Shown: positions 14,388 to 57,539, numbered from the stretch's first letter. The stretch: DNA of 64,000 nucleotides from Guillardia theta CCMP2712 (GCF_000315625.1 NW_005434543.1:55445-119444), one strand, 5' to 3'. The notes: a model not told the origin generated them from the letters alone. Numbers and translations are program-made.

Positions 14388-14436
<49 letters not shown>

Positions 14437-19212: not shown

Positions 19213-19312
19213 NNNNNNNNNNNNNNNNNNNNNNNNNNNNNNNNNNNNNNNNNNNNNNNNNNNNNNNNNNNNNNNNNNNNNNNNNNNNNNNNNNNNNNNN
19301 NNNNNNNNNNNN
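19213..19312. other. assembly gap (100 N)
   Basis: Run of N. Confidence 1.
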
Positions 19313-30989: not shown

Positions 30990-31089
30990 NNNNNNNNNNN
31001 NNNNNNNNNNNNNNNNNNNNNNNNNNNNNNNNNNNNNNNNNNNNNNNNNNNNNNNNNNNNNNNNNNNNNNNNNNNNNNNNNNNNNNNNN
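30990..31089. other. assembly gap (100 N)
   Basis: Run of N. Confidence 1.
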
Positions 31090-39040: not shown

Positions 39041-39320
39041 ATTTTAGGACTCGAGGAGTCACCAGTGTACTAACTGATCATAGCACATGCAGTCTTGAAA
39101 CGAATGGCGAGCTACCTGAAAATGGATCCGGTTCGTAAAAGAAGGTTTCGGTTCTTAAAAAAGAAAAGATTTGCAACACAACTACACAACGATTTGTGAT
39201 GGGTCATCGGCAGCGGGAGGCTTAGGATACGCGTTGCAAATGCGTCAACTATGTTCCTGACGTTGGTACTGCTTCTAAGACAGTGAAGGCCAAAAAGAGG
39301 CATGCAGCGAAATGCCTGCA

Positions 39321-39713
39321 TCAATTCTCATGCGGCAACTTCCAACCAGGAATCAAGCTTTCCCTTCGGTACTGAAGCCGTATCGTACAGCCCTCTCGCG
39401 TCCACAGATGCTTCAGCGCAACCCCCAGGTCGTGGTCCGACGTGATGACGATCTCGTCCTCCTCCTCGTCCGTCCACGACAAGCAGCCCCCAGACATGGC
39501 CGACTCCAAGTGGTACATCAGCTCGCGATAGGCTCCCACAGGCATGCCCGTGGAGCTGACGCTGACCGACAGGATGAGTCTCCGGAGCAAGATCCCGCCC
39601 TTGTCATGACAGGTGATCTTGAAATTGGCCTGGACGCACCGGCGAGCTGGATGGTGAGCGTCTTGAAGGGGAGCAGGAGGAGTAGGGATGATGAGAGTTG
39701 CAGAATTGGTCAT
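39321..39713 (-). CDS. small PB1-domain protein (acidic OPCA motif)
   Basis: LSWTDEEEDEIVITSDHDLGVAL matches the PB1 OPCA pattern [YW]-x-D-E-[DE]-x-D-x-[VI]-x-I-x-S-D-x-D-L. An upstream FKI gives the conserved beta-1 Lys. Confidence 0.65.
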   Translation of the reverse strand: MTNSATLIIPTPPAPLQDAHHPARRCVQANFKITCHDKGGILLRRLILSVSVSSTGMPVGAYRELMYHLESAMSGGCLSWTDEEEDEIVITSDHDLGVALKHLWTREGCTIRLQYRRESLIPGWKLPHEN

Positions 39714-39939
39714 GGTCCGATACGATTGTCCAGTTATGTTGATAGCAAGCTAGAAGAAAATAGAGAGCAACTCAAGACTGTAGAATACGATGAGGATGGC
39801 AAGGTTGAGACAGAGGGAGGGAAGGATGTGGGGTAAGAAGTAAGCACTGTATCGTGGTGCAATAGCAAGAGGAGAAGAGAGAGTATAGGTGGATGGGAGA
39901 GCTGGATGAGGCGCTCCATTGTCCATTGAGCATCATGGC

Positions 39940-40326
39940 ATGCTTGCATTGATCAACAAGGCTGAAGAGAGCGTGTTGTTTTCCGACTTGGGCGGTGATA
40001 TCTTTGCCGTCTACTGCAAGCGAGCTCTTGTCGAGCCAGAATCTAGATCCGTGGAGGAGGTCGGCATGATCCCCGAAGGGTGTGTGATGGATGCAAGTAG
40101 TAGCAACCATGTTGCCAACGCACTGGCAAGGCTCTGCTTCATCTGTGCCGCTTGCAGGCACTGCGAGAAGCTCAGACCTTATGAAAGGACACTGAGAGCT
40201 GTGTGGTTGTTTACAGAGTGTGAGAGGCCGGAATTCAACAAGAACGTTCACGACCTTGCCTGGCTGAGTGCATGTGCCAAGGAGTCGACCAACTCTTTCC
40301 ATTGGTCCGTTCTTCCTTATAGCTGA
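39940..40326 (+). CDS. hypothetical protein with a CxxC-x-x-CxxC cluster
   Basis: Intronless ORF, first ATG at 39940, contains CFICAACRHC. Confidence 0.45.
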   Translation: MLALINKAEESVLFSDLGGDIFAVYCKRALVEPESRSVEEVGMIPEGCVMDASSSNHVANALARLCFICAACRHCEKLRPYERTLRAVWLFTECERPEFNKNVHDLAWLSACAKESTNSFHWSVLPYS

Positions 40327-40395
40327 TCGTTTCAAACATTAGTTTATTAGCCAAATAATTCTAAATCCTCATACCTATCGGTTTTGTTTTCATGT

Positions 40396-42675
40396 TCAAT
40401 ATGAAAAGAATCGGCTTCTGCCTATAATATCTTTGAGTGATGTCATGTTGTTATTGTGCACAAAGACCTTATCTACCTCCTTCTCTTTTGTAGTGTTCCG
40501 ATCTGTGTCGGCATCGTTTGAAATAACAGTATCAATAAGTTTGTCCACATCCCTGTCTTGATCAATGTTTTCTACTTCAAACCTCTGTAGACCCACTGGG
40601 CCAGGATTGATCTGGGCCATATCTTGAATGTCTGTTCCCATAATGTTGATATTGTTCATCCAACCAGGCAATAAGTTATTATTCCTTGCAGGCTGGGGTG
40701 CTGGCATCGGTTCACCCCTCTGATAAGGGAACTGTGGAGCATCATCGCGTACTAGCCATTTCTGAAATCCTGTCTGCTGTATTCCCTTGGTTGTATCCAA
40801 GAAGTATTCTAAGTAGAGCATTGGTCTCTCCTTTACATCCTCGAGTAGAAGTTTCAGCTCATTTACCGATCTCCTCACTTCGTATTTTGTCCTGAATATG
40901 TATACAAGAGTCCTTGTGTCGTTTGTGTTGTACTTTCTTAAGGAGGAGTACGACCCATCCCTAAGGTTCATAGTAGCCTGCAGGCTTGCCCCTGCTGCCT
41001 TGCATATGTGTGTGTGTAAAAGAGGATGTCTCGATATAAAGGTGATAAACTCCCGCCTGCTGAGTTTAAACTCTGTCTGCATTTTCCTTGGATCCCTGCA
41101 TATGTAATTCTCCAGGTTCAGACCCTGTTGCAAGAAAACGTCTTCCACAAGATTGAACGCATCGTCCAATGAATTCCACGCGATGGGTGAAAGGGTCCTT
41201 AATTTCTTCTGTGCCTTGACATATTGCTCTGCCAATGTCCTCAGGTACTTGACGTTGAACATGCTCTTCCTTGCTACCTCGGCGTCAAAATTGACCTGCA
41301 CTCTATCTTCTGCATTGGGGATATTTGGATTGATATCATTAATGTTTATCACACCTGGGATATCTATCACATTGTTCGCATTGTTTCGTTGGGCCTGTCT
41401 TACCCTTTCTACCACCATACGCCTGTATTCCGCCGGATTGTTGTTGTATAGCTCAATGTAACCTTTCAATGGATTGAGTTGCATCTCCAGCAACTTTTCC
41501 GCGTTCTTGCGCAGGACGTCGTAGGTTATGATCTCATTCCCCGACGGTATGGCATGATATACGGGTACCATGACCTGGTCCATGCTCAGCATAGTGGCGG
41601 CACCTGCAATCGACTGCGCCACGGATATCTCCAAAATCACGGCCTCTGTCCACTTGTAAAGGATCAACCTCTCCTGCTCCGTTATATTTGCCTCGGGCTG
41701 TAGGTTATACACATGCCCCTCGACACTCCGGTTTGTGATGTAGTTCCTTATATGTCTGTCCGCTGCTCTTTGTTGGCTGTCCTCTGGGTCCCATTGCCTC
41801 CAATCGTTCTCTCGTCTGTATTCGTCTATGTTGATCTCATCGTCGTGGTATGCGTCTAAGTGCTCTATACCTCTTTCAGATGTCAAATCTATGCATTCTC
41901 TTCTGTCAACTTCATCATCGCCATCGATGTTTCTATATTCGTTCATATCTTCATTTATCTTTACCCTCTTGTTTCTTTCTTCATTGAGTATGTTTCCACC
42001 TGAAGACCATCTTTTTGATACTACAGTGTCTATTCTGTCCTTTTCACCAATTAAAAATGTCCTGTTGTGCAATATCTTCCTTTTTCTTTGTCTTTGGGGT
42101 CGGTTCGGATTTTGTGGTGGGTTTGGTGGTACTTGATTTGGTTGTTGTTGTTGATTTGGTGGCTGGTTTTGTGGTTGGTTTGGTTGTTGATTCGGTGGTA
42201 ATAGATGATTCGGATTTGGTTGTTGTTGATTTGGTGGCTGGTTTTGTGGTTGGTTTGGTTGTTGATTTGGTGGTAATAGATGATTTGGATTTGGTTGTTG
42301 TTGATTGGGTTGTGGGTTATGTGGTGGGTTTTGTGGTTGATTTGGTGGCAATAGATGATTCGGATTTGGTTGTTGTTGATTTGGTGGCTGGTTTTGTGGC
42401 TGGTTTTGTGGTTGATTCGGTGGTAATAGATGATTCGGATTTGGTTGTTGTTGATTTGGTGGCTGGTTTTGTGGTGGTGGGTTTGGTGGTCGATTTGGAG
42501 GTAATAGATGATTCGGATTTGGTTGTTGTTGATTTGGTGGCTGGTTTTGTGGTGGTCGATTTGGAGGTAATAGATTGTTTCGGCCTGGTGGTTGTTGATT
42601 GGGTTGTGGGTTTGGTGGCTGATTTGGTGGTAATAGATTGTTTCGACCTGGTGGTTGTCTGTGGTGATTTGACAT
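40396..42675 (-). CDS. hypothetical ~759-aa viral-like protein with N-terminal Pro/Asn/Gln repeats and a basic NLS-like stretch
   Basis: Long intact ORF with first ATG at 42675. RPQRQRKRK follows the repeats. Minus-strand AATAAA at 40343-40348. Confidence 0.8.
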   Translation of the reverse strand: MSNHHRQPPGRNNLLPPNQPPNPQPNQQPPGRNNLLPPNRPPQNQPPNQQQPNPNHLLPPNRPPNPPPQNQPPNQQQPNPNHLLPPNQPQNQPQNQPPNQQQPNPNHLLPPNQPQNPPHNPQPNQQQPNPNHLLPPNQQPNQPQNQPPNQQQPNPNHLLPPNQQPNQPQNQPPNQQQQPNQVPPNPPQNPNRPQRQRKRKILHNRTFLIGEKDRIDTVVSKRWSSGGNILNEERNKRVKINEDMNEYRNIDGDDEVDRRECIDLTSERGIEHLDAYHDDEINIDEYRRENDWRQWDPEDSQQRAADRHIRNYITNRSVEGHVYNLQPEANITEQERLILYKWTEAVILEISVAQSIAGAATMLSMDQVMVPVYHAIPSGNEIITYDVLRKNAEKLLEMQLNPLKGYIELYNNNPAEYRRMVVERVRQAQRNNANNVIDIPGVININDINPNIPNAEDRVQVNFDAEVARKSMFNVKYLRTLAEQYVKAQKKLRTLSPIAWNSLDDAFNLVEDVFLQQGLNLENYICRDPRKMQTEFKLSRREFITFISRHPLLHTHICKAAGASLQATMNLRDGSYSSLRKYNTNDTRTLVYIFRTKYEVRRSVNELKLLLEDVKERPMLYLEYFLDTTKGIQQTGFQKWLVRDDAPQFPYQRGEPMPAPQPARNNNLLPGWMNNINIMGTDIQDMAQINPGPVGLQRFEVENIDQDRDVDKLIDTVISNDADTDRNTTKEKEVDKVFVHNNNMTSLKDIIGRSRFFSY
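42120..42660 (-). repeat. coding tandem repeat, ~75 bp (25 aa, QQQPNPNHLLPPNQPQNQPQNQPPN); 5 good and 2 degenerate copies
   Basis: Directly visible in both DNA and translation. Confidence 0.9.
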
Positions 42676-42717
42676 GATCAATTCTTCTTCTTTTCTTCAA
42701 AGGGACGGGTTATACGG

Positions 42718-42742
42718 TTTATATGGTAATGTAGATATAAAA
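42718..42742. promoter_or_regulatory. back-to-back TATA boxes of a compact divergent promoter
   Basis: TTTATA at 42718-42723 (TATAAA on minus) and TATAAAA at 42736-42742, inside the 95-bp gap between ATGs at 42675 (-) and 42771 (+). Confidence 0.5.
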
Positions 42743-42770
42743 CTCAATGCTCGTGGATACATTATAGAAT

Positions 42771-43151
42771 ATGAGCCGTGTTGAAAGACTAAGGAGTAGC
42801 GTGGGCAAGGTCTGTAATGTAGAGAAGTTCGGTGGCAAGTGCTGTGTGAGCAAGAATGACACCGTTGTACTTTACGATTACGATGAATGGAACGATAGCA
42901 TGCAGGATAAAATCAAGACTAAATTCCCAAACGTCAGCATCACTTGCACCAATGATAAGGCGAGCCTTTCGGGGTTAGTGATTGTATTTGTGTTGACTGA
43001 TTCTGATAGTGATGTCACTTACTATGTGCTTTGGCACGTTTTTGTGAACCTCATGGTAGCTTTTTGTATATACTACGTCCTGATGAGCAAGGTATGCCAA
43101 TGTGGTTGTTCAAGTCTTCATAGCAACCTTCTAATGTGCGACCGGATCTAG
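42771..43151 (+). CDS. hypothetical protein with a C-terminal transmembrane helix
   Basis: 126-aa ORF with hydrophobic YYVLWHVFVNLMVAFCIYYVLM. AATAAA at 43194-43199. Confidence 0.7.
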   Translation: MSRVERLRSSVGKVCNVEKFGGKCCVSKNDTVVLYDYDEWNDSMQDKIKTKFPNVSITCTNDKASLSGLVIVFVLTDSDSDVTYYVLWHVFVNLMVAFCIYYVLMSKVCQCGCSSLHSNLLMCDRI

Positions 43152-43289
43152 CCATAATTTTTCAAAGCAGTTCACATATAAATGAGGAAGTGAAATAAAC
43201 AATATCAAAGAAACAATTGTCAACGCAGCAAGGAATACCAACAATATTTAACAGACTTTTTATCGTTTCGATTCTATTATTGACAAGAG

Positions 43290-45011
43290 ATGAACCAACA
43301 TAACGTAAATTACACATACCATCCCAGGAATGCTGGGTTGCAGGAGCTGGTTGCACCCCAGAGCAATGCTCCTATCCCTCTAGACAAGACTGCTATAGAG
43401 AAGTTGCAGCACCTAAACAAGATCTACAATGAAGGTAAGTATACCAGGATCTGGTTTATTATCAGCTTCTTCATCCACGCTATCCTTTCTTTCCTTCTTC
43501 TGGTTTTAACCCTGTACGGGATGGGGAGGAATGTAGGAAATTTCCCTATCCTACGGACTTCCTTCACGTCCAAATACGGCGATCTTCCCGACACCATCCA
43601 CCCTACCCTTTATGGTATCACCACAATCCTTACTGATCAGGACAAGGGGTTCATGCCAGTGCCAACAGTCCCGGTCAGCTTCCAGGACGTTCCCATCACG
43701 GACGACAGGCGGAAGGACAGCTACTACTACTGTGTCGATGGAACATTGAACTATACCTCTGCCATTGGTGGGACTATCATGGACCAGACCAGAGCCAAGG
43801 GGATCTGCATGGTTGAGCGTTACTCTGCCGTTGCAAATTATGAGAATCATGAATCGAGCATGACATTCTCCTCTGCATGGAGTCCCATGTTTATGATCAC
43901 CGTCTTGATGTGGATCAGCACCTCCTGGCAGCTTCTCTATGTCGACTTCAAGCAGCTCGGTGGTGTGGATAAGAGGTACTACTATGCCGCCTGGCACATC
44001 CTCACCCTCTTTGGCATCATGGTCTTCTCTTATGTCAGGACGAATGATCGGATGGTTCCTAGGAATAACATCATGTTTGCCATTGCTATCTTGGTCTTTA
44101 GCATCATTCAACAGATCTACATCATGAACCGCCATGGAGATATCATCAAGATCTCCGATACTGAGTACCACCGCCAGGATGAGATCAACTTCATCCGCAA
44201 GATGTACCAGGCCATCGAAAACAATGCGAATAGTAACAGGGTGAAGAAGATCTTTACAGAGAAGCAGCTAGGATTCATCGTCCTTCTCTCCGATTGGCTC
44301 TTGCTCCCCCTGTTCTGTATCAGCATCTTCTCTCTTCTCTCTAACAACGTGCTAGAATGGGTCTTCCAGGCCACCTACGTTAGGTACCAATTGATCATCT
44401 TGGGTTTTGTTCTTATTCAACAGCTCAAGGTGGTAGAACAGGTCACTAACATGAAGATGAAGATGTTTAAGAGTTCTAAGAACAGGGCATTGGCTTATGA
44501 ATTCCATCCAAGGCTTGTGATCCTCTTTGCCATCCTCTTTGCCGCTATCAATGAGATCGTGAGCATGACCGATACCTGGACCTCACAGCACGATCACACG
44601 GTGACCCGGACATATTCAAGCTTATACCTTGCCACCATCGTCCTCTACTTCGCCACCGTATCTTATTGCGTTTTCCGCAGGATTGGATCGACTGGTGGGA
44701 CTGTGAGTGAAGATGGTAACGTCTATGGCGTTACAAGGCAGGACGACAAGAGCGGTACAATGATCAACATGGCATCATCCTTTTTGCGGATCGTCTTTGT
44801 AGGCATCCTTCTTGCATATCTTTTCAATGACTATAACAAGTACTCGTGCTGGTCGAGCAGCAAGAGCAAGAGCCTATTCTGTGGTCATGCCAATGCTCTG
44901 AATAATCTCAACAATAGGGATTTCTTGAAGCCAATCGCCATTACGAGTGGAAACGCTACCAGTGTCTACGAGACGCTTTTTAGCTCCATCACCTATGCAC
45001 CCATGATTTAG
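43290..45011 (+). CDS. multi-pass membrane protein, tentatively heliorhodopsin-like (retinal Lys position apparently Arg)
   Basis: 573 aa with about 9 hydrophobic segments. The first helix has a His (IISFFIHAILS), followed by a long Cys-containing loop. The last helix has S-S-F-L-R where heliorhodopsins have S-x-x-x-K. The CDS is well supported, the family call is weak. Confidence 0.6.
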   Translation: MNQHNVNYTYHPRNAGLQELVAPQSNAPIPLDKTAIEKLQHLNKIYNEGKYTRIWFIISFFIHAILSFLLLVLTLYGMGRNVGNFPILRTSFTSKYGDLPDTIHPTLYGITTILTDQDKGFMPVPTVPVSFQDVPITDDRRKDSYYYCVDGTLNYTSAIGGTIMDQTRAKGICMVERYSAVANYENHESSMTFSSAWSPMFMITVLMWISTSWQLLYVDFKQLGGVDKRYYYAAWHILTLFGIMVFSYVRTNDRMVPRNNIMFAIAILVFSIIQQIYIMNRHGDIIKISDTEYHRQDEINFIRKMYQAIENNANSNRVKKIFTEKQLGFIVLLSDWLLLPLFCISIFSLLSNNVLEWVFQATYVRYQLIILGFVLIQQLKVVEQVTNMKMKMFKSSKNRALAYEFHPRLVILFAILFAAINEIVSMTDTWTSQHDHTVTRTYSSLYLATIVLYFATVSYCVFRRIGSTGGTVSEDGNVYGVTRQDDKSGTMINMASSFLRIVFVGILLAYLFNDYNKYSCWSSSKSKSLFCGHANALNNLNNRDFLKPIAITSGNATSVYETLFSSITYAPMI

Positions 45012-45035
45012 ATTTATAAAGGTTTTATTAAATCT

Positions 45036-45356
45036 TTAAAGTGGATATAGCAATTCATAGTCTAATTCACTGTCCTTGCACTTCTTTACATACCGGCTTA
45101 AGGTGATAAGGTATAAGCTGTATAGGTAGATGGTTGATGTGATGACATAGAGTGAGGTGCAAGCCGGGGACTTGGTAGCGTCCTGGCTAGACTTTTGTAG
45201 GTGGTACTGTATAGTGTTTGCTTCGTATCGATAGTTGATAGGGTAGGGCCTGGAGATCGCATCTGCAATCTCTATGGTCAGGTTGTCGGGAATGTATAGA
45301 GTGATGAGCACTGTAAGGGTAAAGACTGTCACGAAAAGGATGGCACTGATTTTCAT
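45036..45356 (-). CDS. small membrane protein with two hydrophobic segments
   Basis: The ATG at 45356 (MKISAILFVTVFTLTVLITLYI) avoids overlap with the upstream gene. Minus-strand AATAAA at 45024-45029. Confidence 0.6.
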   Translation of the reverse strand: MKISAILFVTVFTLTVLITLYIPDNLTIEIADAISRPYPINYRYEANTIQYHLQKSSQDATKSPACTSLYVITSTIYLYSLYLITLSRYVKKCKDSELDYELLYPL

Positions 45357-45360
45357 CGCC

Positions 45361-45876
45361 TTAGTGTTTCTTCCATGTCTTCTGCTCAGGTGCGTTGAAA
45401 TACGGTAGCATTGTGAGTTCATACGTCAACTTGGTGTCCATCATGCAATATTCCTCAAGCTCCTTCAACCTGCCCTCCTTCGCCATCTTGACCGCCTCAT
45501 AACCATTCGAAGTCTTGGTCTTGAGATTGTTACACATCAACGCGCTATCCAACGAGAATGTATGGTTGTGGAGTGACTTGTACTTGTGAAATATATCTAC
45601 TGTCTTTAACAGCCACATCGCAACCCTGTCCGGATCCGCCTTGAATTGCACCTGTACAAATGGTATGTCGAACTGTATCCCGTTGAATGTGCATATCTGA
45701 TCCGCGTCATCCAACTCTCTCATGAACTCTTCCGCTCTCTCCCTCTTTTCCTTGAAGTCACCGACAGTGAAATGGAAACTTTTCTCTTTCCCTATGGCAG
45801 GGTCATAGATGCATATGCAGGTGATTGAATCTTTGTAAAAGTTTAATCCAGTCGTTTCTATATCAAAGGCGAGCAT
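45361..45876 (-). CDS. stand-alone DEDDy 3'-5' exonuclease (RNase H-like fold)
   Basis: ExoI FDIETTGL, ExoII TFNGIQFDIPF, ExoIII EEYCMMD. Confidence 0.85.
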   Translation of the reverse strand: MLAFDIETTGLNFYKDSITCICIYDPAIGKEKSFHFTVGDFKEKRERAEEFMRELDDADQICTFNGIQFDIPFVQVQFKADPDRVAMWLLKTVDIFHKYKSLHNHTFSLDSALMCNNLKTKTSNGYEAVKMAKEGRLKELEEYCMMDTKLTYELTMLPYFNAPEQKTWKKH

Positions 45877-45936
45877 ATCCCCTTCGATACGCTTATGGGT
45901 CTGGCCCGACTATGAAATGATCGATTCTAAAAAGTT

Positions 45937-46236
45937 TTATGAACACCAAGACCTGCAGGTGCGCTTGACGATGGCGTGGACTGAGTTGTGCTTGCTGTTG
46001 CTATTATCATGAAGGCTGCTAGTTGGATCGATGACAGTCCCTAGTCTTTGCGTGCATACAAGGATGTAATCGTTTAGCTCCTGCCTTTTTCTTGTCTGTA
46101 TAATCTGCAGATGGTCCGTTGCGGACGAGCTCTGTATCATGGATTCTTTTTGTAAGAGGCTCTTGAGTGCGGGTGAGGTAATAACGTGATTTTGATTATG
46201 TTTAGAGGATGAGCTGCCATTATTTGAGGATTGCAT
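45937..46236 (-). CDS. hypothetical protein
   Basis: 99-aa ORF that fills the gap between its neighbours without overlap. Confidence 0.5.
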   Translation of the reverse strand: MQSSNNGSSSSKHNQNHVITSPALKSLLQKESMIQSSSATDHLQIIQTRKRQELNDYILVCTQRLGTVIDPTSSLHDNSNSKHNSVHAIVKRTCRSWCS

Positions 46237-46260
46237 TTTTGATCGTGTTAAAACAAAGAA

Positions 46261-46896
46261 ATGAAATCAATACTATTTCGAACCATTTTTTTAAGTGTGT
46301 GCTTATCCATTGCTCTAGCGAATGATATATTGACCGATCACGAAAGTCTGTTCGTTTCTAAGATGCAGGAGGTCTTTATGATAAAGGATGGAAGCATTAT
46401 AGTAGACCCTAAAGATACGACCATTGTCTCTGCACTCCGAAAGGAGATTCGATCTATAATCACAAATTACACCGGGGTGAGCTCGTTGGATGACTTCCGG
46501 AACTCTAGCATAGTCAATGACGATGACATCGTCCTGGTGATCATGCTCGCTGTAATGGGAAACTTCCACAGAAGGAGTGTAACGAATGCTGATGTCTATG
46601 ACGACGTACAGATCGTCTTTGACCCGTTGGACGGCAAGTTTGTCATACTCCAAAACCTAAGGGATACAGAGATGACGGTCTTCAAGGCACTCTTGGTAGT
46701 GTCAGTGGCAGGGCTCCTTCTGATCTTCATGATGGACAAAGACGATAAGAAGAATAGGATTGAAGAAGAGGAGAGGAGGAGGCAAGAAGAGGAAAAGTTG
46801 CGGCAAACGAACGTGAACCTAGAAGCTTTATTCGGCCGAGCAGTGACACCATTGCATACAAATCAAGGAATACATACAATCAAGTTTAGGAAATGA
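46261..46896 (+). CDS. type I membrane protein (signal peptide, TM, charged tail)
   Basis: Signal MKSILFRTIFLSVCLSIALA, TM ALLVVSVAGLLLIFMM, and N-glycosylation sequons NYT and NSS. Confidence 0.75.
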   Translation: MKSILFRTIFLSVCLSIALANDILTDHESLFVSKMQEVFMIKDGSIIVDPKDTTIVSALRKEIRSIITNYTGVSSLDDFRNSSIVNDDDIVLVIMLAVMGNFHRRSVTNADVYDDVQIVFDPLDGKFVILQNLRDTEMTVFKALLVVSVAGLLLIFMMDKDDKKNRIEEEERRRQEEEKLRQTNVNLEALFGRAVTPLHTNQGIHTIKFRK

Positions 46897-46898
46897 TT

Positions 46899-47210
46899 TT
46901 AATCCTTGTCTTGCTTCTTAATGCTGTAGCCGTAAGCATCTTTGATCTCAAAGACTTCAGTGTAGAACCCGCTATCTATCATGAAGTTCAACGACTTTAG
47001 GGAAGATATAACCTTCTCGTTTTCTCTCTGTACTTCACATTTACGGGTGAAATTTGGACAGTGGATGATCTTGTTCAGACATTGCCGCTCGTCCTTGCTG
47101 TAACAGACATTCTCTCGGAGGATTGACGCTATCCCCTTGATGACTATATGGCACGATCTTACCGGGAACGGGTGTAGTACGAATAGCAGCAGTATTATTT
47201 TTGAGTACAT
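46899..47210 (-). CDS. small secreted Cys-containing protein
   Basis: Signal-like MYSKIILLLFVLHPFPVRS and 5 Cys. Converges on the neighbouring stop with a 2-bp gap. Confidence 0.6.
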   Translation of the reverse strand: MYSKIILLLFVLHPFPVRSCHIVIKGIASILRENVCYSKDERQCLNKIIHCPNFTRKCEVQRENEKVISSLKSLNFMIDSGFYTEVFEIKDAYGYSIKKQDKD

Positions 47211-47319
47211 TTCGAATACAACTTGTCACGGACCTTGGAGTTAAGACCTTGAACACAAATCTCTTCAAATCACTCCCCAGTTTCATTGTTTTTCAACCAA
47301 AAAAGGAAAATTACGTCTT

Positions 47320-47574
47320 ATGGGGGTGGGATTTGACGCACTTATCCTGGACGTACAGGAGAGTTCAAACCTCGTCATCGTCTGCCCATTGGAGGAGGCG
47401 TCGGTGATTTGCATAGAGACAGACAAGAACTTGCGCTTTCTATCTAAGCTCTCTCCATATACCCTGGTCCGTATAGAGGGTACAAGTTGGAACCTACAGA
47501 AGAAGAGGTTCGTGGGTGGAGATATCAATATCTTCAACGTCGATTACAGTCATGGCTTTGCAGTGGAGTGTTAG
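47320..47574 (+). CDS. small beta-rich hypothetical protein
   Basis: 84-aa ORF with a short overlap onto the next ATG. Confidence 0.5.
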   Translation: MGVGFDALILDVQESSNLVIVCPLEEASVICIETDKNLRFLSKLSPYTLVRIEGTSWNLQKKRFVGGDINIFNVDYSHGFAVEC

Positions 47575-48472: not shown

Positions 48473-48539
48473 ATCAGTGTACAGAGTTATTTAATTGTAT
48501 ATCAATCCAATTGCAAGATAATAAAAGCAAACGATTGAA

Positions 48540-49952: not shown

Positions 49953-50020
49953 ACTCCATGACAAATAAATTTAGAAATCAATAATCAATAACAACCTGAC
50001 AATGAATCAAAACCCAGAAT

Positions 50021-50336
50021 ATGATCTCAAGAAAAAGTAACACTTACTTCAAACCCGATGTCAAGGTAAGCATTGATGTGTATGTATGTGAATCTTATAG
50101 CTTACGTTTATGCTCAGATTGACATCAATAAGAAAATGCATGATTTCTTTCACATCTATTACACCAAATCGCGAGGAAACTGGGTATACCAGGATGGTTG
50201 TTTCTTTATTTCTTTGAGTATCATCGGATACTTCATTTCCTATGCTATCACTTTCGAAGCATACTATCCAGAGATGGAGGTGTTAGCTATCGATTATTAC
50301 CACCATGACTTTCTTGGATTGAAGAGGGACTGGTAG
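50021..50336 (+). CDS. small hypothetical protein with one predicted 52-nt GT-AG intron (50066-50117)
   Basis: ATG at 50021 gives 15 codons, then AAG|GTAAGC...TGCTCAG|ATT rejoins the frame of ORF 50073-50336 in phase 0. AATAAA at 50357-50362. Confidence 0.6.
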
Positions 50337-50366
50337 AGTGTTGATTCTTAAGTTTGAATAAAACTT

Positions 50367-51185
50367 TCAAGAGCATTGACTCATGATCAAGACATCGATG
50401 GGTTCAAACGGTCTTCCACCATTCATCACCCTGCCAAAGACACGGATAGAATCTCCATAGGAGCTGCCATTCATGTAAAAGGGCTTTGGGTAGATGATGT
50501 TCTTCTTGTAAAGGCTCTTTGTCGCCTCATTCTTGTAATTCCCCATTGCATTGCGTTCAAAGAACTCCCTTCTTGTCCTTTCAGCGTCATTGTTCTCGTC
50601 TTGATCCAATGGTTGCAGATTGTTGTTATAGATCCTCTTGCCATCCTTTGAAAATCTCGAATGCTCAAAGTCAAAATACCACTGGAGATAATCACCCGTG
50701 TAACAATGGAAATGGCCATTCATGATCGTCGCCATCCCACATACAAGCACAGAAGCTATGTTGTCCCCATGGTTCATTGTGGCCCAGGCGAGGGCATTCG
50801 CAACACCCTGGAACTGGAACTCGGGTATCAACTGCCTTGCAACAGACTTGGCATGATTATATTCAAGCTGCGTCTCGGATGCATATATGTCCATAATCTC
50901 CTGCTTCAGGTCATCTGTGACTTCACCCAAAGTAGTGATAACGGGTGGATAGGCCTGCCGATTCACCTTGTAAGTCATGCGATTGACGGGATTGAAGGGC
51001 TTTGCAACACAAAGAACCAACTCGTCTTTATGCATGCAATACTTGTACTTATCGAGATGGATCCTGTGGATGAATTCTGGGTTACTGAGGATTTTCAATG
51101 CATCCTCCGACACCCTACATGCAATGATATGCTTGGAAGCAGAATCCACCCTGGTCCCAGTGATCTGGCCTACGCTAGCGTTCAT
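50367..51185 (-). CDS. putative capsid triplex/cement-like protein, paralogue A
   Basis: Motif order DELV..VITTLG..FQGVA..G-x-x-T-I-x-NG..GD-x-x-QW..RVFGRV..G-x-P...DVLI. This resembles beta-tulip decoration/triplex proteins. First ATG at 51185. Confidence 0.55.
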   Translation of the reverse strand: MNASVGQITGTRVDSASKHIIACRVSEDALKILSNPEFIHRIHLDKYKYCMHKDELVLCVAKPFNPVNRMTYKVNRQAYPPVITTLGEVTDDLKQEIMDIYASETQLEYNHAKSVARQLIPEFQFQGVANALAWATMNHGDNIASVLVCGMATIMNGHFHCYTGDYLQWYFDFEHSRFSKDGKRIYNNNLQPLDQDENNDAERTRREFFERNAMGNYKNEATKSLYKKNIIYPKPFYMNGSSYGDSIRVFGRVMNGGRPFEPIDVLIMSQCS

Positions 51186-51263
51186 TTTGCGATACAAATA
51201 TAATGCTTCTTAATGGATTTATTAGGAATAACATAAACCCTTAAATACAAGCCTATTGGCACA

Positions 51264-52133
51264 TCATGGAAGGAAGACATTGGTAATCATGATATCGACC
51301 TGTTCCCAAGGGCCTCCACCATTGATAACCTTCCCAATCACTCTCTGAAGGTCACCGGTGGCGATCTCTAAAATATTGCCCTGTGCGTCCTTCCTTGGCA
51401 TCAAGGACTTCATAAAGAAGACGTTATGCTTCCCCTGGTTGTACTGTTTGTAGGTCCCGTACATGTTCCTCCTTGCAACCGATTCCAATTCAGCCTCGCG
51501 CCTCGCGACAGGGTCTGAGTTGCCCAAATATCTCCTCCTTGCAACCCTCTCTACGGTACCGGGCCTGAGATGGGCTGTGTCCGGGTGCCTGTAACCTTCC
51601 ACATCGAACATAACCTCTTCGAAATCAAAGTACCACTGAACTAGATCACCCGTAAAGGCTGGGAAATTTCCATTGATGATCGTGACCATCCCACCGATCA
51701 GGGCGGATGCAAAGGTGTCACCACTCAAGTCCGATGCCCAGCCTGTCCCGACACTGATGCCCTGGAACCTGAGCTGTCTGGGGAATGGATATTGCGTATC
51801 CTCAGCGACAATGTTATCAATCTCGATATTGTTGTAATAATCTAACAACTCCCTCTTATTCTCTTCTGTCACCTCCTGGCCAAGCGTCGTAATCACGTAG
51901 GGATAGCATACCTTCCTTGTCGTATTGTCTGTCCTGACCGAGCAGTTCATGACGATCTCATCTTTCTGCATAGCATAGAGATACTTTTGTTTCAAAATCT
52001 TTTCCATCGGCTCACCCTGCTCCCGGAAAAAGTCTTGATCCACCCTGCATGCCACAATGTGCTTTGCAGATGAATCAATCCTCGTGCCGGTTCTCTGGCC
52101 GATGCTCACGTTGTTGCTAAAGATGCTAGTCAT
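51264..52133 (-). CDS. putative capsid triplex/cement-like protein, paralogue B
   Basis: Collinear similarity to 50367-51185, e.g. GTRIDSSAKHIVACRV, YPYVITTLG, GGMVTIINGNF..TGDLVQWYFDFE, RVIGKVINGG. Confidence 0.55.
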   Translation of the reverse strand: MTSIFSNNVSIGQRTGTRIDSSAKHIVACRVDQDFFREQGEPMEKILKQKYLYAMQKDEIVMNCSVRTDNTTRKVCYPYVITTLGQEVTEENKRELLDYYNNIEIDNIVAEDTQYPFPRQLRFQGISVGTGWASDLSGDTFASALIGGMVTIINGNFPAFTGDLVQWYFDFEEVMFDVEGYRHPDTAHLRPGTVERVARRRYLGNSDPVARREAELESVARRNMYGTYKQYNQGKHNVFFMKSLMPRKDAQGNILEIATGDLQRVIGKVINGGGPWEQVDIMITNVFLP

Positions 52134-52222
52134 GTGTTATAGTCTTATTCCTATTTTATTTTTATAGTAAGAAGGCCCTGTTAGTTTATATACATTCATA
52201 AGTGGTTCCAATGTAATAAAGT

Positions 52223-53188
52223 CTAACACTTCTTTTTATTCTTGCTGTTATAGACTATCGCAGCGTCCTGTAACCTTCTACCCTTACACTTGTTGCATCT
52301 CCCCTTACAGCACGGGCATGCACTCTTCTTGAGATCGATCGCAAACTTGGACGATGCATTGGCGAGTGAAGAGGGTAACTTGTAAATGTTGAGGAGTGTT
52401 GCATTCCCATAAACAACGGTTGTGATGCTTGTCTTTTTGAAGTAATCTTTGTCGATGCCCAAGTTACTGATAATAGAATCCAAAGGATAGATCTTCAAGG
52501 CATCCATAGTGGTGTAACAACCGTAGGGCGCGCAGAAATGGACGTGGAGTTGGTAGACACTTGGAAGATAATGCACATATGCCATGATGTTATGAGCATT
52601 GTGCTGTGTAACACTCTGGATATAATCAATACAGGTCATCTTCATCTTCCTCAACATGGGTATGTGCCTAGCGTCCAGATCTCTCAATGTCCTCAACTTC
52701 CTATCCTTTACAATACACAGCCAATTGTATACACTTCCATTGTTCATGGCGTGGGTATCGGGAAGGAATACAAACTCGTCTGTCTCTATGAGGACGGAGT
52801 CCTTCTCTCTCGTGCCATCCAATATCTCATAGATCCACTTGTTCTTGTTTGAATTTACTTGCGTTTCGATGTAGTCTTGCATTGGAGCCCCAAAAGCGAT
52901 TGAAGGGGTACAGTTCACAACACACCTCTCATGATAGAATACAATATCCTTGAGTGCAATGTCTTCACTCCTAATTTTTGTTGTCTTGACATGTTGAGAT
53001 TCGGATGATGTATCTGATGAACTCTCGGATAAATTCACTGACGAACTTTCAGATGAATTATCGGATGAATCCAGATCGCTTACACTTATGCGACAGTCAC
53101 TTGTGAATTTAAAGTTTTTGAACACATTATTCATGCCCATGTCCTTTGTCTTGAAATCAATTATATCCTTACTATGATGCATGATCAT
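52223..53188 (-). CDS. DcpS-like m7GpppX diphosphatase (scavenger decapping enzyme, HIT family) with a C-terminal Cys cluster
   Basis: WIYEILDG..E, FVFLPD, LRTLRDL...HIPML and YVHYLPSVYQLHVHF match the DcpS C-terminal domain (human HYLPSYYHLHVHF). First ATG at 53188. Confidence 0.85.
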   Translation of the reverse strand: MIMHHSKDIIDFKTKDMGMNNVFKNFKFTSDCRISVSDLDSSDNSSESSSVNLSESSSDTSSESQHVKTTKIRSEDIALKDIVFYHERCVVNCTPSIAFGAPMQDYIETQVNSNKNKWIYEILDGTREKDSVLIETDEFVFLPDTHAMNNGSVYNWLCIVKDRKLRTLRDLDARHIPMLRKMKMTCIDYIQSVTQHNAHNIMAYVHYLPSVYQLHVHFCAPYGCYTTMDALKIYPLDSIISNLGIDKDYFKKTSITTVVYGNATLLNIYKLPSSLANASSKFAIDLKKSACPCCKGRCNKCKGRRLQDAAIVYNSKNKKKC

Positions 53189-53270
53189 GAATTTATTTGA
53201 AATTTCCTTACAGAAGGTTCTAAAAACCAAAGCTCCCTATATACCCGACTACAGGTATCTATATGACTTT

Positions 53271-53921
53271 TCACTGATCACCACTTCTCTCATCATTTTT
53301 TTCTTCATCTCCAGTCCTAACCTCATCACCGTTCTCATCTCGCATGGCCATAGCAAGGAGATCATCGGAATCATCCAACCCAATCTCACGATAATGGAGC
53401 TCGTTGTCATACTTTAGGAGCTTGGACTGGGCAAGGATGAGCTGAGCTCTGTTGACCTGGATCTTGTGGCTAAGGTCCTTTCTCCTAAGCTTCAGAGCAT
53501 CAGTCTCCACCTTCCTAAAGGGTCTCTTGGGCTTCGGTGCCTTCTTTGGCTTTGGATCCTTGGGCTTCTTCTCTTGTGTCTCAGTCTGGGACTCCTTTTT
53601 GGCCTTCTTTGTTTCTCTCTCCTCGGTCGAATCCTCCTTGCTATTTTTTGATTTCTTGTTCGCAGTAGCAGCCCCCTTACTTGAACCCTTCTCTTGCTTC
53701 GCTTTTGCTTTGCTCTTTGCTTCGCTCTTTGCTTCGCTCTTTGCTGCTTCACCCTTCGCTTCACCCTTCGCTTCGCTCTTTGCTCCCCCCTTGTTTTTTG
53801 GCTTCTTCTCTTTCGAGATTTGCTTGGATTTGATTTCCTCCTCGGTCTCTTCAACTTCTTCTTCCTCCTCCTCCACTTCTTCATCCATCCCCTCCATCAA
53901 GTCACGAATACGGTTATCCAT
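53271..53921 (-). CDS. Lys/Glu-rich low-complexity protein with a C-terminal coiled coil; possibly DNA-binding
   Basis: Acidic N-terminus, AKSE/AKGE repeats, KKPKDPKPKKAPKPKRPFRK. First ATG at 53921. Confidence 0.7.
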   Translation of the reverse strand: MDNRIRDLMEGMDEEVEEEEEEVEETEEEIKSKQISKEKKPKNKGGAKSEAKGEAKGEAAKSEAKSEAKSKAKAKQEKGSSKGAATANKKSKNSKEDSTEERETKKAKKESQTETQEKKPKDPKPKKAPKPKRPFRKVETDALKLRRKDLSHKIQVNRAQLILAQSKLLKYDNELHYREIGLDDSDDLLAMAMRDENGDEVRTGDEEKNDERSGDQ

Positions 53922-53967
53922 ACTGTCCTCTTGATTCAAGATAGAGCTTGTTGCTGAAATTCCTGCA

Positions 53968-54963
53968 ATGGAAATCGATCAATGCAAGAAGATGGACATA
54001 ATATGGGACTGCATGGGTTGGATACAAATGAATGTCGAATGGGGTAGGGTGGTACCGATCATATCGTCGTTTGCAGTTGCAGTCCTAGTGAGACTCTCAA
54101 TATATTATGTCGAAAGAATCAAAAAAATGGGTTTAAAAACAGCCTTTCGAACAGGTTTGAACGGATGGTTGTATCCAAAAAAAAAGAACCCTGCCCATGA
54201 TGTCAAAATCAACCCTTATTTTTTAATATTGAAAAAAAGGAGAGAGATGAAATTACCCTTACAGAAGAGCAACTATGTATTTCAGTTCATGGTTGAGATG
54301 GATCGGTTGAAACAAAAAGAACGCATCATGAAGGAACTATACAATATAGATGAAGAGAAGGAAAATAATAAGGATTGCATAATCCAAGATGAGCAATTCT
54401 ACGAATCACAGCTATTGTACGAGAATGGTGCATTCATGTGCACGCCTGCATGCCTCCTCTTCTCTACAGCAGTAGTAGGAATGGATGTGTGTTCATGCCC
54501 ACCGACCAAAAGCCAGATGAACTGCATCATGACATCGGCATCAAAAATCCAATCATTACTTCTGTCCAAGGACGATAGAAATCACATGTTCTCCATCCGT
54601 GACGTCATCAACCACGTCAAGATACCCGATACCTATCAGAGGGTGGAGATCGTGGGATCTATAGCTAGGTTGCCAGAAGACTTCATCACAAACTTCGAGG
54701 ACGACAACGAGCGACGACAATGCATCATGGATCTGCATGGAGCCGTTATGGCACTTAGGAACAACACGGCACTCGTCATAACACTGAAAAGAAACGCGCA
54801 CACAGTGGCACTCTACAGAAAATCGGCAAAGAAACACTATTACTTCGATCCACTCATTGCGACAGTGAAGGATGTTGGTGATTCAAGCATGGCACTGTTT
54901 GAGGTGTTCAAGATCGCCAGGATGGCAGAGGAATTCACTGGCCTTATCATATCAAAAGAATAA
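53968..54963 (+). CDS. papain-like cysteine protease (putative deubiquitinase/deconjugase) with an N-terminal TM segment
   Basis: SQLLYENGAFMCTPAC gives a candidate oxyanion Gln and catalytic Cys. AHTVALYR...YYFDP gives His and Asp. Confidence 0.55.
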   Translation: MEIDQCKKMDIIWDCMGWIQMNVEWGRVVPIISSFAVAVLVRLSIYYVERIKKMGLKTAFRTGLNGWLYPKKKNPAHDVKINPYFLILKKRREMKLPLQKSNYVFQFMVEMDRLKQKERIMKELYNIDEEKENNKDCIIQDEQFYESQLLYENGAFMCTPACLLFSTAVVGMDVCSCPPTKSQMNCIMTSASKIQSLLLSKDDRNHMFSIRDVINHVKIPDTYQRVEIVGSIARLPEDFITNFEDDNERRQCIMDLHGAVMALRNNTALVITLKRNAHTVALYRKSAKKHYYFDPLIATVKDVGDSSMALFEVFKIARMAEEFTGLIISKE

Positions 54964-54981
54964 CAACGATTTATTCACATC

Positions 54982-56391
54982 TTAATAAACAATGAAACAA
55001 TGAGATTTCAAACTCCATACATTCCCAAGCCCAAGATCAAGTTCCTTCTGAAGGTAACTAGAAGCATTGGCATCCCCAACCTTGTGGCTGAAGTTGAACT
55101 TCATATCATACTTTGAGTTGATGCTCCCAATCTCATAATTCCCCCTAGAGATGTTCTTGAACATGTCACCCTCGATACACTTGATCTTCTGTGACATTGT
55201 CTGCAACGCCTTGTCAATGAAACGGTTGGAAAGCTTCCGCTCCTCTTCCGTCATCTCGGTCTCCAACGCCTTCTGATACTCCCTGAGCAACGATGCGCTC
55301 TTGATCCACTTACCCTTCTGCTGAGCGGTGAGCTTCTTCGCAGATTCCGTCATCTTGCTGTCCGGTCTCATCTTCAAGACACCCTTATAGACCTGGGACC
55401 GGATGTGTGTATTGCAAACATCTCCAAGCGCCTCGACCACCTTGGGGGCATGCATCCTGACCAACTCATAACGGAAGCTGCCATGGAGCTTGTGGAACAT
55501 TTCAGTAGGAACGCTCAAAAAGACAGAATAAAGGTTGCTATCGTCTTCCACATCTTTCTTTGATGATGCACCGGCAAGGTTGCCCATATCTACAGAGATC
55601 ACCGCGAGTGAATGGTTGGGCTCGGGGCTGTAAGGCAAATAAAGGTTATCAATCACATAAGTGTCACCCTTCGAGTTCTTTGCGATCATCTTATGCCTTA
55701 CAAGGTCGATCCCCTTCTTCCCAAGCGAACGGCTCCACGACTTGACGTTCTCAATGTGCTGTGACCAATCGAGTTCGGTGCTAGTGCTCATCTTGGCGAT
55801 TGCCTTGGCACTGAGACGGTAGGTTCCATATTGGCTCTTGACATCCCAATCCTTACCCTCACCATTCTTGCTCGTAGCCAATGAATACAGCTTTGTGAAC
55901 ATGGCGCCAGAGATCAAGGTCTCTGGGATCTTGCTCTCGATGTTGACTTCACCCTCGTTTTGAAGGTTGCTGCCCATCTTATTCTTGCCCGACTTTGACC
56001 AATCTTCCTTGATCTTGGAGATATGGTCGATGACGGCGTTCTTGAGCTCGTCGAGAGTGTCAAACAATGAATTGTATGGCGTCATGATCTGCTTCAGGTG
56101 CTGCTTGTCGCATGACAGTGACTTTCCACTTGGTGGTGGAAGGGACACCTTCATCTCATTGGACGAGATCATCTTCAAGGGAGTAAGGTTACCATTGCTA
56201 CCCCCAGAATGCACGGTAGATTTGATCAATGTGTGCAGATCTTTGGCCTCGATGATGTTGAAATCATGACCCGTTCCACTCTCAATTACATGGTTCACAG
56301 TCTCACAGATGGATGAGTTCTCAAAGTTCTTGAAGTTTTTATGGATGCTGTCAGTGGCAAACGTTCCAGATGACTGTAGGATGTAGGACAT
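54982..56391 (-). CDS. hypothetical ~469-aa protein
   Basis: Long intact ORF with first ATG at 56391. Minus-strand AATAAA at 54970-54975. Confidence 0.8.
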   Translation of the reverse strand: MSYILQSSGTFATDSIHKNFKNFENSSICETVNHVIESGTGHDFNIIEAKDLHTLIKSTVHSGGSNGNLTPLKMISSNEMKVSLPPPSGKSLSCDKQHLKQIMTPYNSLFDTLDELKNAVIDHISKIKEDWSKSGKNKMGSNLQNEGEVNIESKIPETLISGAMFTKLYSLATSKNGEGKDWDVKSQYGTYRLSAKAIAKMSTSTELDWSQHIENVKSWSRSLGKKGIDLVRHKMIAKNSKGDTYVIDNLYLPYSPEPNHSLAVISVDMGNLAGASSKKDVEDDSNLYSVFLSVPTEMFHKLHGSFRYELVRMHAPKVVEALGDVCNTHIRSQVYKGVLKMRPDSKMTESAKKLTAQQKGKWIKSASLLREYQKALETEMTEEERKLSNRFIDKALQTMSQKIKCIEGDMFKNISRGNYEIGSINSKYDMKFNFSHKVGDANASSYLQKELDLGLGNVWSLKSHCFIVY

Positions 56392-56492
56392 TCTCTTTCT
56401 ACTATTGTTCGATAATTCTTTCACGCCTAGTGTTTGTATACAAAAAAGGATGTTGGTACAGGGACTGCATGTCAATCATGTTAAATACTTTA

Positions 56493-57239
56493 TTAACTTG
56501 CAAGGCGCATAAGGGTTGCCAGCGAAACGATCATAAATGTAAAGCTTGCAAACGCAAGATAGATTGAGCCCCAATCCTTCTTCAGAGCCAAAACCACAGG
56601 CCTGACAGTCATATCTCTAACCAATGTGTCAGCACTCAATACACTCCCATTGCTTTGCATGATATACTCTTGAACACCATCTCTGATCAGGTTTGTAAGC
56701 CTGAGCATGTCGAACCTATCGGATTCGATCATCAACACAACCTCCAATGCAATCACATCGATCCCAACCGCGCCAGACCCACCTATGTTGTAGCCTTCAA
56801 ACCAAGTTGTGTTGGGGAGTCCATAATCATTCAAGTTGTTGCTACTGAAAACTCCCGTCTGCTGCATCCAGCTCGGCAAATTGTACTGGCTAAGGTTGCT
56901 GTGAAGGTTGACGGCAGGGTTGATTTTCATCCGCATTGCCTTTTCATACAACCCCCTAAGACTCTGAATATAGATCCTCCACTCCTCGGCATGTTGCTGA
57001 TTGTGGAACTCTGTCAACGCAACGACGCGATATTCACGAAATGGCCCAAGGACCTTATGGAACGCACCTTCTAGTCGCTCCGATACCTTGGTATCCAACC
57101 ATTTACCCATACTAGGAATAGTCATGTCCCAATCCTTTGGATAGCGATCATAGACCCCGGCATCTTGCATTGTAAGATTGCGATCTACAAACAGATAAAG
57201 ACTGAGCCCCACCACCATACCAAAATCAAAAGGGATCAT
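56493..57239 (-). CDS. membrane protein with N- and C-terminal hydrophobic segments
   Basis: 248 aa. The TAA stop overlaps AATAAA (56489-56494, minus). Confidence 0.75.
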   Translation of the reverse strand: MIPFDFGMVVGLSLYLFVDRNLTMQDAGVYDRYPKDWDMTIPSMGKWLDTKVSERLEGAFHKVLGPFREYRVVALTEFHNQQHAEEWRIYIQSLRGLYEKAMRMKINPAVNLHSNLSQYNLPSWMQQTGVFSSNNLNDYGLPNTTWFEGYNIGGSGAVGIDVIALEVVLMIESDRFDMLRLTNLIRDGVQEYIMQSNGSVLSADTLVRDMTVRPVVLALKKDWGSIYLAFASFTFMIVSLATLMRLAS

Positions 57240-57539
57240 ACACTTAGAACGTGACCGTTTTTTTAAGGAGCCAAATCTCGAGATTTCGAACCCACGAAAG
57301 CAGACTTTTGTCGGGATATAGAGGAACTTTGTCAGGGCCGGCAGGAACTATCGGGGGGCTACCGGGTATGACTGAGAAAGGTTACACCCGACAATCGTCA
57401 TGGGACACCGGGCGGTACCGATCATGTTGTGGTACTAGAAAGTGATAACTGAAAATATAGCTCAACCATGGGTTTCAGTGGGTGATTATTATTATTAGCT
57501 AACCGACACAAAACATAAAAATTTCAAAAATTCTAAGAT

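Follow-up and report, generated by a model that had tools for sequence, protein, structure and literature searches.

A probable partial endogenous mirusvirus element in the nuclear genome of Guillardia theta

How has a tight run of intronless genes with low GC content come to lie inside a protist chromosome? The question is raised by a 64,000-nt stretch of Guillardia theta CCMP2712 DNA (the window, to whose first letter all positions refer), which belongs to scaffold JH993095.1 (189,962 bp) of the assembly GCA_000315625.1; the annotated gene GUITHDRAFT_146690 is 100% identical to the open reading frame (ORF) at 54,982-56,475. Mirusviricota is a phylum of large, herpes-like DNA viruses of protists, and we consider it likely that the island reaching from about 40,340/40,396 to 57,245, in the alga's nuclear genome, is an incomplete endogenous element derived from such a virus. 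The original prediction had likewise proposed a partial mirusvirus-like element, and both collinear virus-like contigs and mirusvirus-typical neighbour genes speak for it.

What is left would be two collinear stretches from a virus genome that was much larger, probably more than 200 kb, and they meet at a 414-bp spacer. The first, block L (40,396-49,952, 11 genes), appears to hold membrane proteins, a 3'-5' exonuclease and small ORFs. The second, block R (50,367-57,245, 7 genes), would comprise a duplicated Triplex-2-like gene, a DcpS/HIT gene, a candidate UL36-like protease, two proteins without functional annotation and a truncated edge gene. We suggest that the larger genome integrated and that most of its sequence was later lost. 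As the window lacks a capsid, portal, terminase, protease or polymerase gene, the element would presumably be incapable of forming particles alone.

The island and its host flanks

The island is a real compositional feature within contiguous host sequence. All 1-kb bins between 40 and 57 kb have a GC content of 0.41-0.47, while the flanks have 0.55-0.63, and the mean within the window is 0.44 for the island vs 0.553 outside it, in agreement with the lower GC content first judged by eye. The sliding GC profile steps at about 40.3 kb and at 57.25-57.55 kb. An island at 39,300-57,530 had been proposed; its existence holds, but its left edge was set about 1 kb too far out, and 16,850 bp lie between 40,396 and 57,245. 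We left 39,300-40,340 out because its GC content is intermediate, it contains an ORF (39,324-39,713) with a weak PB1 match and it has no viral homologue.

The island holds 18 genes, coding sequence makes up 92% of it, and the spacers measure -62 to 138 bp save the one of 414 bp, so that the dense packing described earlier stands while the count of about 19 does not. ATG-initiated ORFs of at least 99 residues number 23, compared to a mean of 1.5 and a maximum of 6 in 200 shuffles of the island, and the longest has 759 residues vs at most 190 in the shuffles. It should be noted that the ORF count alone is not distinctive of the island, since the GC-rich flanks hold many long ORFs too. There are no introns in the island. 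Microsatellites of period 3-6 are dense at 0.3-37.1 kb and are back again past 59.6 kb; the sole arrays inside the island are in-frame coding repeats, which confirms that host-type microsatellites are missing there. For all 18 genes collinear homologues were found elsewhere.

Host-like genes flank the island on both sides, as had been proposed. To the left are the ORF with the PB1 match and an ankyrin/EF-hand gene, and to the right an ATP-synt_E gene model at about 59.1-59.8 kb. The host-to-viral sequence is contiguous at both junctions, with no N run within 9 kb of either; three scaffold gaps of 100 N (17,131-17,230, 19,213-19,312 and 30,990-31,089) are in the host part and none is near the island. 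Neither inverted nor direct repeats joining the island ends were found, and the window has neither tRNA genes nor Rfam matches.

Between the truncated viral gene at the right edge and GC-rich host-type repeats lie about 300 bp (57,246-57,550) with a GC content of 0.43-0.49, in which neither an ORF nor a homologue was found. Apart from the island, a search of the window with all related ORFs hit nothing but ankyrin repeats of a host gene. The host ORF at 8,939-14,746 (1,935 residues, with ankyrin repeats and EF-hands) was rejected as viral, having only ankyrin-repeat similarity to an Ank-RING protein on the locus L066.

The Triplex-2-like paralogs and their gene neighbourhoods

The most conserved genes of the island are two adjacent Triplex-2-like paralogs, A (51,264-52,133, minus strand, 289 residues) and B (50,367-51,185, minus strand, 272 residues), which are 35% identical to each other. 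Paralog B is 89% identical to its counterpart on L001, a contig of Logan run SRR30872625, and 92% to that on L016, from run SRR20069373. The window shares the tandem pair with L001, L016 and L019, and each copy is 81-92% identical between relatives. An exhaustive profile search gave at least 368 representative clusters of the family at E<=1e-3, none of them with a name; 87 are left at the stricter E<=1e-30.

Paralog A was modelled by AlphaFold 2 (AF2) from a 98-sequence alignment, and the model is confident (predicted local distance difference test, pLDDT, 87.6; predicted TM-score, pTM, 0.87). Its Foldseek list from the PDB consists mostly of herpesvirus capsid reconstructions (6nhj, 5vku, 6q1f, 6cgr, 7fj1 and others), with matched capsid chains of 250-300 residues, and also includes proteins that decorate tailed-phage capsids, for example phi29 gp8.5 (6qyy). 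The BFVD results are headed by a protein of Ranid herpesvirus 3 that is uncharacterised (E=1e-3, probability 0.93), by the 'Capsid triplex protein 2' that Lake sturgeon herpesvirus, an alloherpesvirus, encodes (probability 0.95), and by the alloherpesvirus protein A0A384ZV55. By herpesvirus likeness of the paralogs we mean these named matches returned by the fold searches. PDB sequence searches with paralog A and with the family profile gave nothing meaningful.

The published Mirus_Triplex2 orthogroup, OG0000005, has 830 members, measures 864-1047 nt in reference genomes and has 6qyy_A, 6q1f_c and A0A384ZV55 as best matches (Medvedeva et al. 2025, PMC12768974 supplement). The paralogs share both these fold-search targets and the length, the underlying fold matches being weak. 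The triplex-like pair of the original prediction thereby finds support, having a confident fold and the targets published for mirusvirus Triplex2. There is good but indirect evidence, drawn from the model, that the paralogs may be Triplex-2-type capsid proteins, and the matching targets together with the neighbouring genes suggest that their family is the published Triplex2. Further, we speculate that the capsid triplex of this cryptophyte-associated lineage could be built of two specialised Tri2-type subunits, or that one copy could act in the Triplex1 role; we find this rather unlikely, though if true, either arrangement would amount to a hitherto undescribed form of herpes-type capsid cement.

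About 20 kb of each long contig was read. Family members lie on Tara, Canadian-lake and Joint Genome Institute (JGI) contigs of 50-233 kb, and relatives are found on contigs of virus-genome size (>100 kb; 100-107, 128, 169, 233 and 238 kb); the family-bearing contigs of 100-238 kb include Ga0645784_00031, Ga0255759_10000010 and TARA_SAMEA2622628 scaffold_50. Of the 53 metagenome loci with enough upstream DNA for scoring, 38 have a DcpS-like gene directly upstream of the triplex-like gene and in the same orientation, as has the window, and a DcpS homologue is upstream of it also in L001, L007, L013 and L014. In 8 metagenome loci an exonuclease homologue lies within 10 kb of the triplex-like gene. 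Other neighbour genes encode heliorhodopsin, RING, NUDIX, Snf7, protein kinase and TBP (E=1e-39) proteins, and ephrin-receptor-like proteins of 2,400-2,800 residues.

These neighbourhoods resemble what has been published for mirusviruses. PF13482 exonuclease and DcpS_C genes stand side by side in mirusvirus genomes, whose gene tables include ephrin-receptor-like giant proteins and VIPP1/ESCRT-III-like proteins (PMC12768974 supplement). TBP was found in 59% of mirusviruses vs 0% of Nucleocytoviricota, and heliorhodopsin in 64% vs 5% (Gaïa et al. 2023, PMC10132985). Among such mirusvirus-enriched accessory genes, DcpS_C and RNase_H_2 are in the island itself; heliorhodopsin stands beside the collinear block in L017, a 238,337-bp JGI metagenome contig, and in L018, a contig of Logan run SRR20069373; the ephrin-receptor-like giant proteins and Snf7 are on family-bearing contigs, not in the island. 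The samples with two of the Tara contigs (SAMEA2622628 and SAMEA2622605) also yielded mirusvirus metagenome-assembled genomes (MAGs). A TBP-like gene had been predicted within the island, and this we could not reproduce: no island ORF of at least 81 residues matches PF00352, even at E<=10, and the TBP that we detect lies on a metagenome contig, as one of the genes near a family member.

In the published data, a 201-residue DcpS_C gene of MIRUS_G_0022 carries the label 'Mirus_Triplex2', and the Triplex2 of MIRUS_G_0001 has 536 residues (PMC12768974 supplement). Some published Triplex2 models may hold a fused or merged DcpS part, which would fit the conserved adjacency of DcpS and triplex-like genes.

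The absence of major capsid protein (MCP), terminase, polymerase and integrase genes, already remarked upon in the original prediction, is confirmed within the window. It has no candidate for an HK97-fold MCP; no island ORF has a Pfam match to a portal, terminase or maturation protease, which a fragment need not carry; and none of the informational module (PolB, RNA polymerase A/B, TFIIS, TBP) is in the island. Mirusvirus capsid genes have already been reported in this G. theta assembly, as clade E03 (Zhao et al. 2024, PMC10827195).

Several points weigh against the assignment to mirusviruses. The HK97 MCP, portal, terminase, protease and PolB are found neither in the window nor in the sequence-identifiable stretches. 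Foldseek gave paralog A no PDB match at E<=1e-3, with TM-scores of 0.2-0.3, and the equation with Triplex2 is made through shared targets and context, not through direct sequence comparison. IMG/VR returned no relative of paralog A, of the 469-residue protein alignment (block R) or of a Tara family member. The large neighbour proteins (811-1498 residues) have no Pfam match, and a PDB sequence search with the profile of the neighbour family of 1,340-1,498 residues gave no match. The Herpes_teg_N matches of the block R protease candidate's homologues on L015 and L014 fall short of the Pfam threshold. Finally, the case for integration is made on contiguous assembled sequence.

We weighed four other explanations and gave none of them more than a slim chance. 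The one that survives best is an unclassified large DNA virus lineage that shares only a few genes with mirusviruses. Most island genes are without annotated relatives and the hallmark genes are not directly seen, both of which favour it, but the paralog family has the fold-search targets and length of Mirus_Triplex2, the gene neighbourhoods agree with published mirusvirus gene sets, and mirusvirus MAGs come from samples whose assemblies hold some of the contigs; we regard such a lineage as improbable.

A fragment of a Nucleocytoviricota giant virus, that is, of a giant endogenous viral element (GEVE), we consider more improbable still. Giant-virus insertions are frequent in protists, a VLTF3-type signal has been reported in G. 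theta (PMC5294986), and the PARP_regulatory, protein kinase, glycosyltransferase and heliorhodopsin genes among the neighbours occur in giant viruses too. However, the capsid, A32, D5 and VLTF3 genes of nucleocytoplasmic large DNA viruses are unmatched both in the island and among the 105 neighbour clusters, as is PolB; the fold searches match the paralogs best to capsid accessory proteins of herpesviruses and tailed phages and not to jelly rolls; and TBP is present among the neighbours, a gene that separates mirusviruses from Nucleocytoviricota in the survey cited above (PMC10132985).

Two collinear blocks and their genes

In favour of a mirusvirus remnant, each block can be followed, gene for gene, in relatives elsewhere. 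Block L keeps its gene order and orientation in both L017 (31-68% amino-acid identity) and L018 (46-79%), where even the small ORFs of 84, 99 and 103 residues are conserved. Block R is collinear with L001 (48-89% identity), with L016 (paralogs at 90-92%), with L019, a 5.6-kb contig holding DcpS and both paralogs, and with L014, another G. theta locus, which is more divergent (JH993134.1:1-18,828).

The longest spacer of the island, 414 bp at 49,953-50,366, is the joint of the blocks and a synteny break. After the last gene of block L, which encodes 470 residues, L017 and L018 go on with a PF18761 heliorhodopsin gene, and after paralog B, L001 and L016 go on differently from the window. Where relatives carry heliorhodopsin, neither the gene nor a remnant of it is detectable in the window. 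In total, 17 of the 18 genes are full length compared to relatives, one edge gene is truncated once and one syntenic gene is absent. The island had been described as intact, which is true for these 17 ORFs but not for the whole, a two-block remnant with a truncated edge gene.

The ratio of nonsynonymous to synonymous substitutions (dN/dS) vs L001 is 0.08-0.24, with synonymous sites saturated; it reflects selection during virus evolution and does not date the insertion. GC content is also useless as a clock, because the relatives span 0.44 to 0.60. The intact ORFs are in keeping with a recent insertion, while a weaker reading is that they could be intact because the host uses some of them.

The two-block structure also bears on whether the island is an assembly artefact, in which free or episomal virus DNA of the culture was joined to a host scaffold. 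The junctions were judged on assembled sequence, and Hanusia phi transcripts of homologues leave room for related viruses being active in cryptophyte cultures. Against this, the sequence is gap-free at both junctions; a free genome would not be expected to come as a two-block remnant that has lost a syntenic gene and part of an edge gene; and a second, divergent copy of block R lies in another host scaffold. We therefore give an artefact very little probability. A Polinton-like virus (PLV) or virophage-type element, like the PLVs known in G. theta, hardly deserves consideration, for apart from a length of about 17 kb that is within the PLV size range, nothing speaks for it: the island lacks terminal inverted repeats, genes for a packaging ATPase, pPolB, primase-helicase or integrase, and any recognisable capsid gene, the relatives of both blocks are on contigs of 50-238 kb, and the edge gene is truncated.

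Some further observations concern the relatives. L014 is GC-rich (0.55-0.65), 25-59% identical to block R with part coverage only, and has an AAA_11 helicase-like gene and a gene model of about 1,525 residues beside its triplex-like gene. Logan run SRR20069373, the source of both L016 and L018, holds close relatives of both blocks with the same GC content as the island (0.44), and its copy retains heliorhodopsin. In Hanusia phi, a sister species represented by transcriptome-derived EukProt proteins (P0005, P0268, P0256, P0258, P0260 and P0014), there are homologues of genes from both blocks, namely of the 469-residue gene (70%), of the 470-residue gene (66%) and at least four triplex-like proteins. 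As these stem from transcripts, related elements seem to be transcribed there.

Only two island genes have clear Pfam matches, the RNase_H_2 exonuclease of block L and the DcpS_C/HIT protein of block R. Block L begins with a 761-residue gene (40,396-42,681, minus strand) without a Pfam match, whose N-terminal ~210 residues are Pro/Asn/Gln-rich repeats of 25 residues; past the repeat the protein is 49% identical to residues 189-740 of a 742-residue L017 protein. A 75-nt tandem repeat at 42,069-42,660 (5.4 copies, 91% matches) encodes the 25-residue units, and this part does not align to the L017 homologue. It is followed by a 126-residue gene (42,771-43,151, plus strand) with a C-terminal hydrophobic segment by hydropathy and homologues in the same position of L017 (68%) and L018 (74%), and by a predicted 573-residue multi-pass membrane protein (43,290-45,011, plus strand) with about six transmembrane-like (TM-like) segments, which aligns over its full length to L017 (49%) and L018 (68%) and has no Pfam match at E<=1.

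Next, a 128-residue gene with one TM-like segment (45,036-45,422, minus strand), also with same-position homologues in L017 and L018, overlaps by 62 nt the gene of a putative 171-residue 3'-5' exonuclease of the RNase H-like superfamily (45,361-45,876, minus strand). The latter matches RNase_H_2 at E=1.1e-15 and, as second Pfam match, DNA_pol_A_exo1 at 1.5e-5, and is 79% identical to L018 and 60% to L017. The 99-residue gene (45,937-46,236, minus strand) has a full-length L018 homologue at 73%. A type-I-like membrane protein of 211 residues (46,261-46,896, plus strand; 61-64% to L018 and L017) has, by hydropathy, a signal-like N-terminus, one TM segment and a charged tail. After it come a Cys-rich 103-residue gene with an N-terminal hydrophobic segment (46,899-47,210, minus strand; 57-64% to L017 and L018), the 84-residue gene (47,320-47,574, plus strand; 70% to L018 over the full length, 47% to L017) and a gene of about 306 residues (47,552-48,472, plus strand), 46% identical to L018 and 31% to L017 from residue 9 on. 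This last gene is also listed as a 318-residue ORF starting with GTG at 47,516, for which there was no Pfam match at E<=10 and no meaningful PDB sequence match.

The 470-residue protein at the end of block L (48,540-49,952, plus strand) has about seven TM-like segments behind a hydrophilic N-terminus of 125 residues as judged by hydropathy, and homologues in a Hanusia phi transcript (66%), in Logan contigs and in the 238-kb JGI contig (52%). A rhodopsin-like gene had been predicted here, which our searches do not support: neither this nor the 573-residue protein matches a rhodopsin family of Pfam (PF18761, PF01036) at E<=10, and phmmer finds no match at E<=10 between the 470-residue protein and the heliorhodopsins of L017 and L018. 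The Pol II-type signals reported earlier amount to a few TATA-like heptamers in 3 of the 18 upstream regions, too weak for a promoter claim.

In block R, the gene upstream of the paralogs (52,223-53,230, minus strand) encodes a DcpS-like HIT-family protein with a Ser-rich N-terminal extension (DcpS_C, E=1.5e-21), predicted to be of the scavenger decapping/nucleotide hydrolase type. Beyond it is a Lys/Glu-rich charged protein of 222 residues (53,271-53,939, minus strand) with a 12-nt coding repeat and homologues in L001, L014 and L013. The 331-residue protein (53,968-54,963, plus strand) has homologues in L001, L014, L015 and L010. Herpes_teg_N is the best Pfam match of two of these homologues (L015 at E=9e-4, L014 at E=0.019); the window protein itself has no Pfam match, and a PDB sequence search with it gave nothing meaningful. 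It might be a UL36-type (Herpes_teg_N-like) cysteine protease, which we offer as a weak lead and not as a finding.

The 469-residue protein (54,982-56,391, minus strand) is 100% identical to part of the gene model GUITHDRAFT_146690 and 47-76% identical to its relatives, including a Hanusia phi transcript. Its AF2 model, built from 8 sequences, was discarded as too poor for use (pLDDT 42.5). The last gene (56,493-57,245, minus strand) corresponds to the C-terminal ~45% of a 556-residue, membrane-anchored protein; it is 60% identical to residues 303-555 of that L001 protein, and nothing in the window matches the N-terminal part. In the NCBI (National Center for Biotechnology Information) and JGI annotation, the virus genes at 50,367-52,133 and 54,982-57,245 are modelled as spliced host genes: an NCBI model of 538 residues fuses both triplex-like paralogs, and GUITHDRAFT_146690 (649 residues) links the 469-residue gene with part of the truncated edge gene.

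Comparison with known systems

The Polinton-like viruses of G. theta (Yutin et al. 2015, PMC4642659) have the same host and a similar size, but the island lacks inverted terminal repeats and ATPase, polymerase, integrase and jelly-roll capsid genes, and its relatives are on contigs of 50-238 kb. With algal GEVEs it shares large-DNA-virus genes in a protist chromosome, non-host composition, truncation and gene loss; unlike them it has no Nucleocytoviricota hallmarks, and its structural gene resembles herpes-type capsid accessory proteins.

At the level of the single gene, the paralogs are close in length to Mirus_Triplex2 (272-289 residues here vs 287-348 in reference genomes; PMC12768974), and the targets 6qyy (phi29 gp8.5), 6q1f (human herpesvirus 6B capsid) and A0A384ZV55 link them to it and to herpesvirus Tri2. 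This likeness is drawn from fold-search targets and length; the paralogs differ in being two adjacent, 35%-identical copies in the window, L001, L016 and L019.

Earlier publications have described endogenous mirusvirus regions as well as signals of mirusviruses in G. theta. We found no paper naming this scaffold, gene or Logan run accessions, and the capsid-less island itself is in no paper found. What is new is that the DcpS and Triplex-2-like genes form a conserved pair, that the Triplex-2-like gene is duplicated in tandem in a cryptophyte-associated lineage, and that the island has a two-block structure with heliorhodopsin missing at the joint. Conserved in 38 of the 53 metagenome loci, the gene pair could be a useful synteny marker in recognising mirusvirus contigs. 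A cryptophyte-mirusvirus pairing, open to study from existing data, is hinted at by relatives from two Logan runs and from the transcriptomes of Hanusia phi, and the island is a mapped example in a model alga whose public annotation has virus genes as spliced host genes.

The closest comparison is with endogenous mirusvirus regions (Zhao et al. 2024, PMC10827195; AurliV-2 of Aurantiochytrium, PMC12606086), which are likewise intronless, gene-dense viral DNA in a host scaffold, with a virion-module gene of triplex type, putative in the island, and host genes on both sides; clade E03 of Cryptophyta even comes from the same assembly of G. theta (GCA_000315625.1; PMC10827195). The island differs from them in being only about 17 kb long, in joining two non-adjacent genome pieces and in having no capsid gene, and an MCP-based screen would therefore not have flagged it. 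Capsid-gene screens overlook such capsid-less mirusvirus remnants, and the viral share of protist genomes is therefore underestimated.

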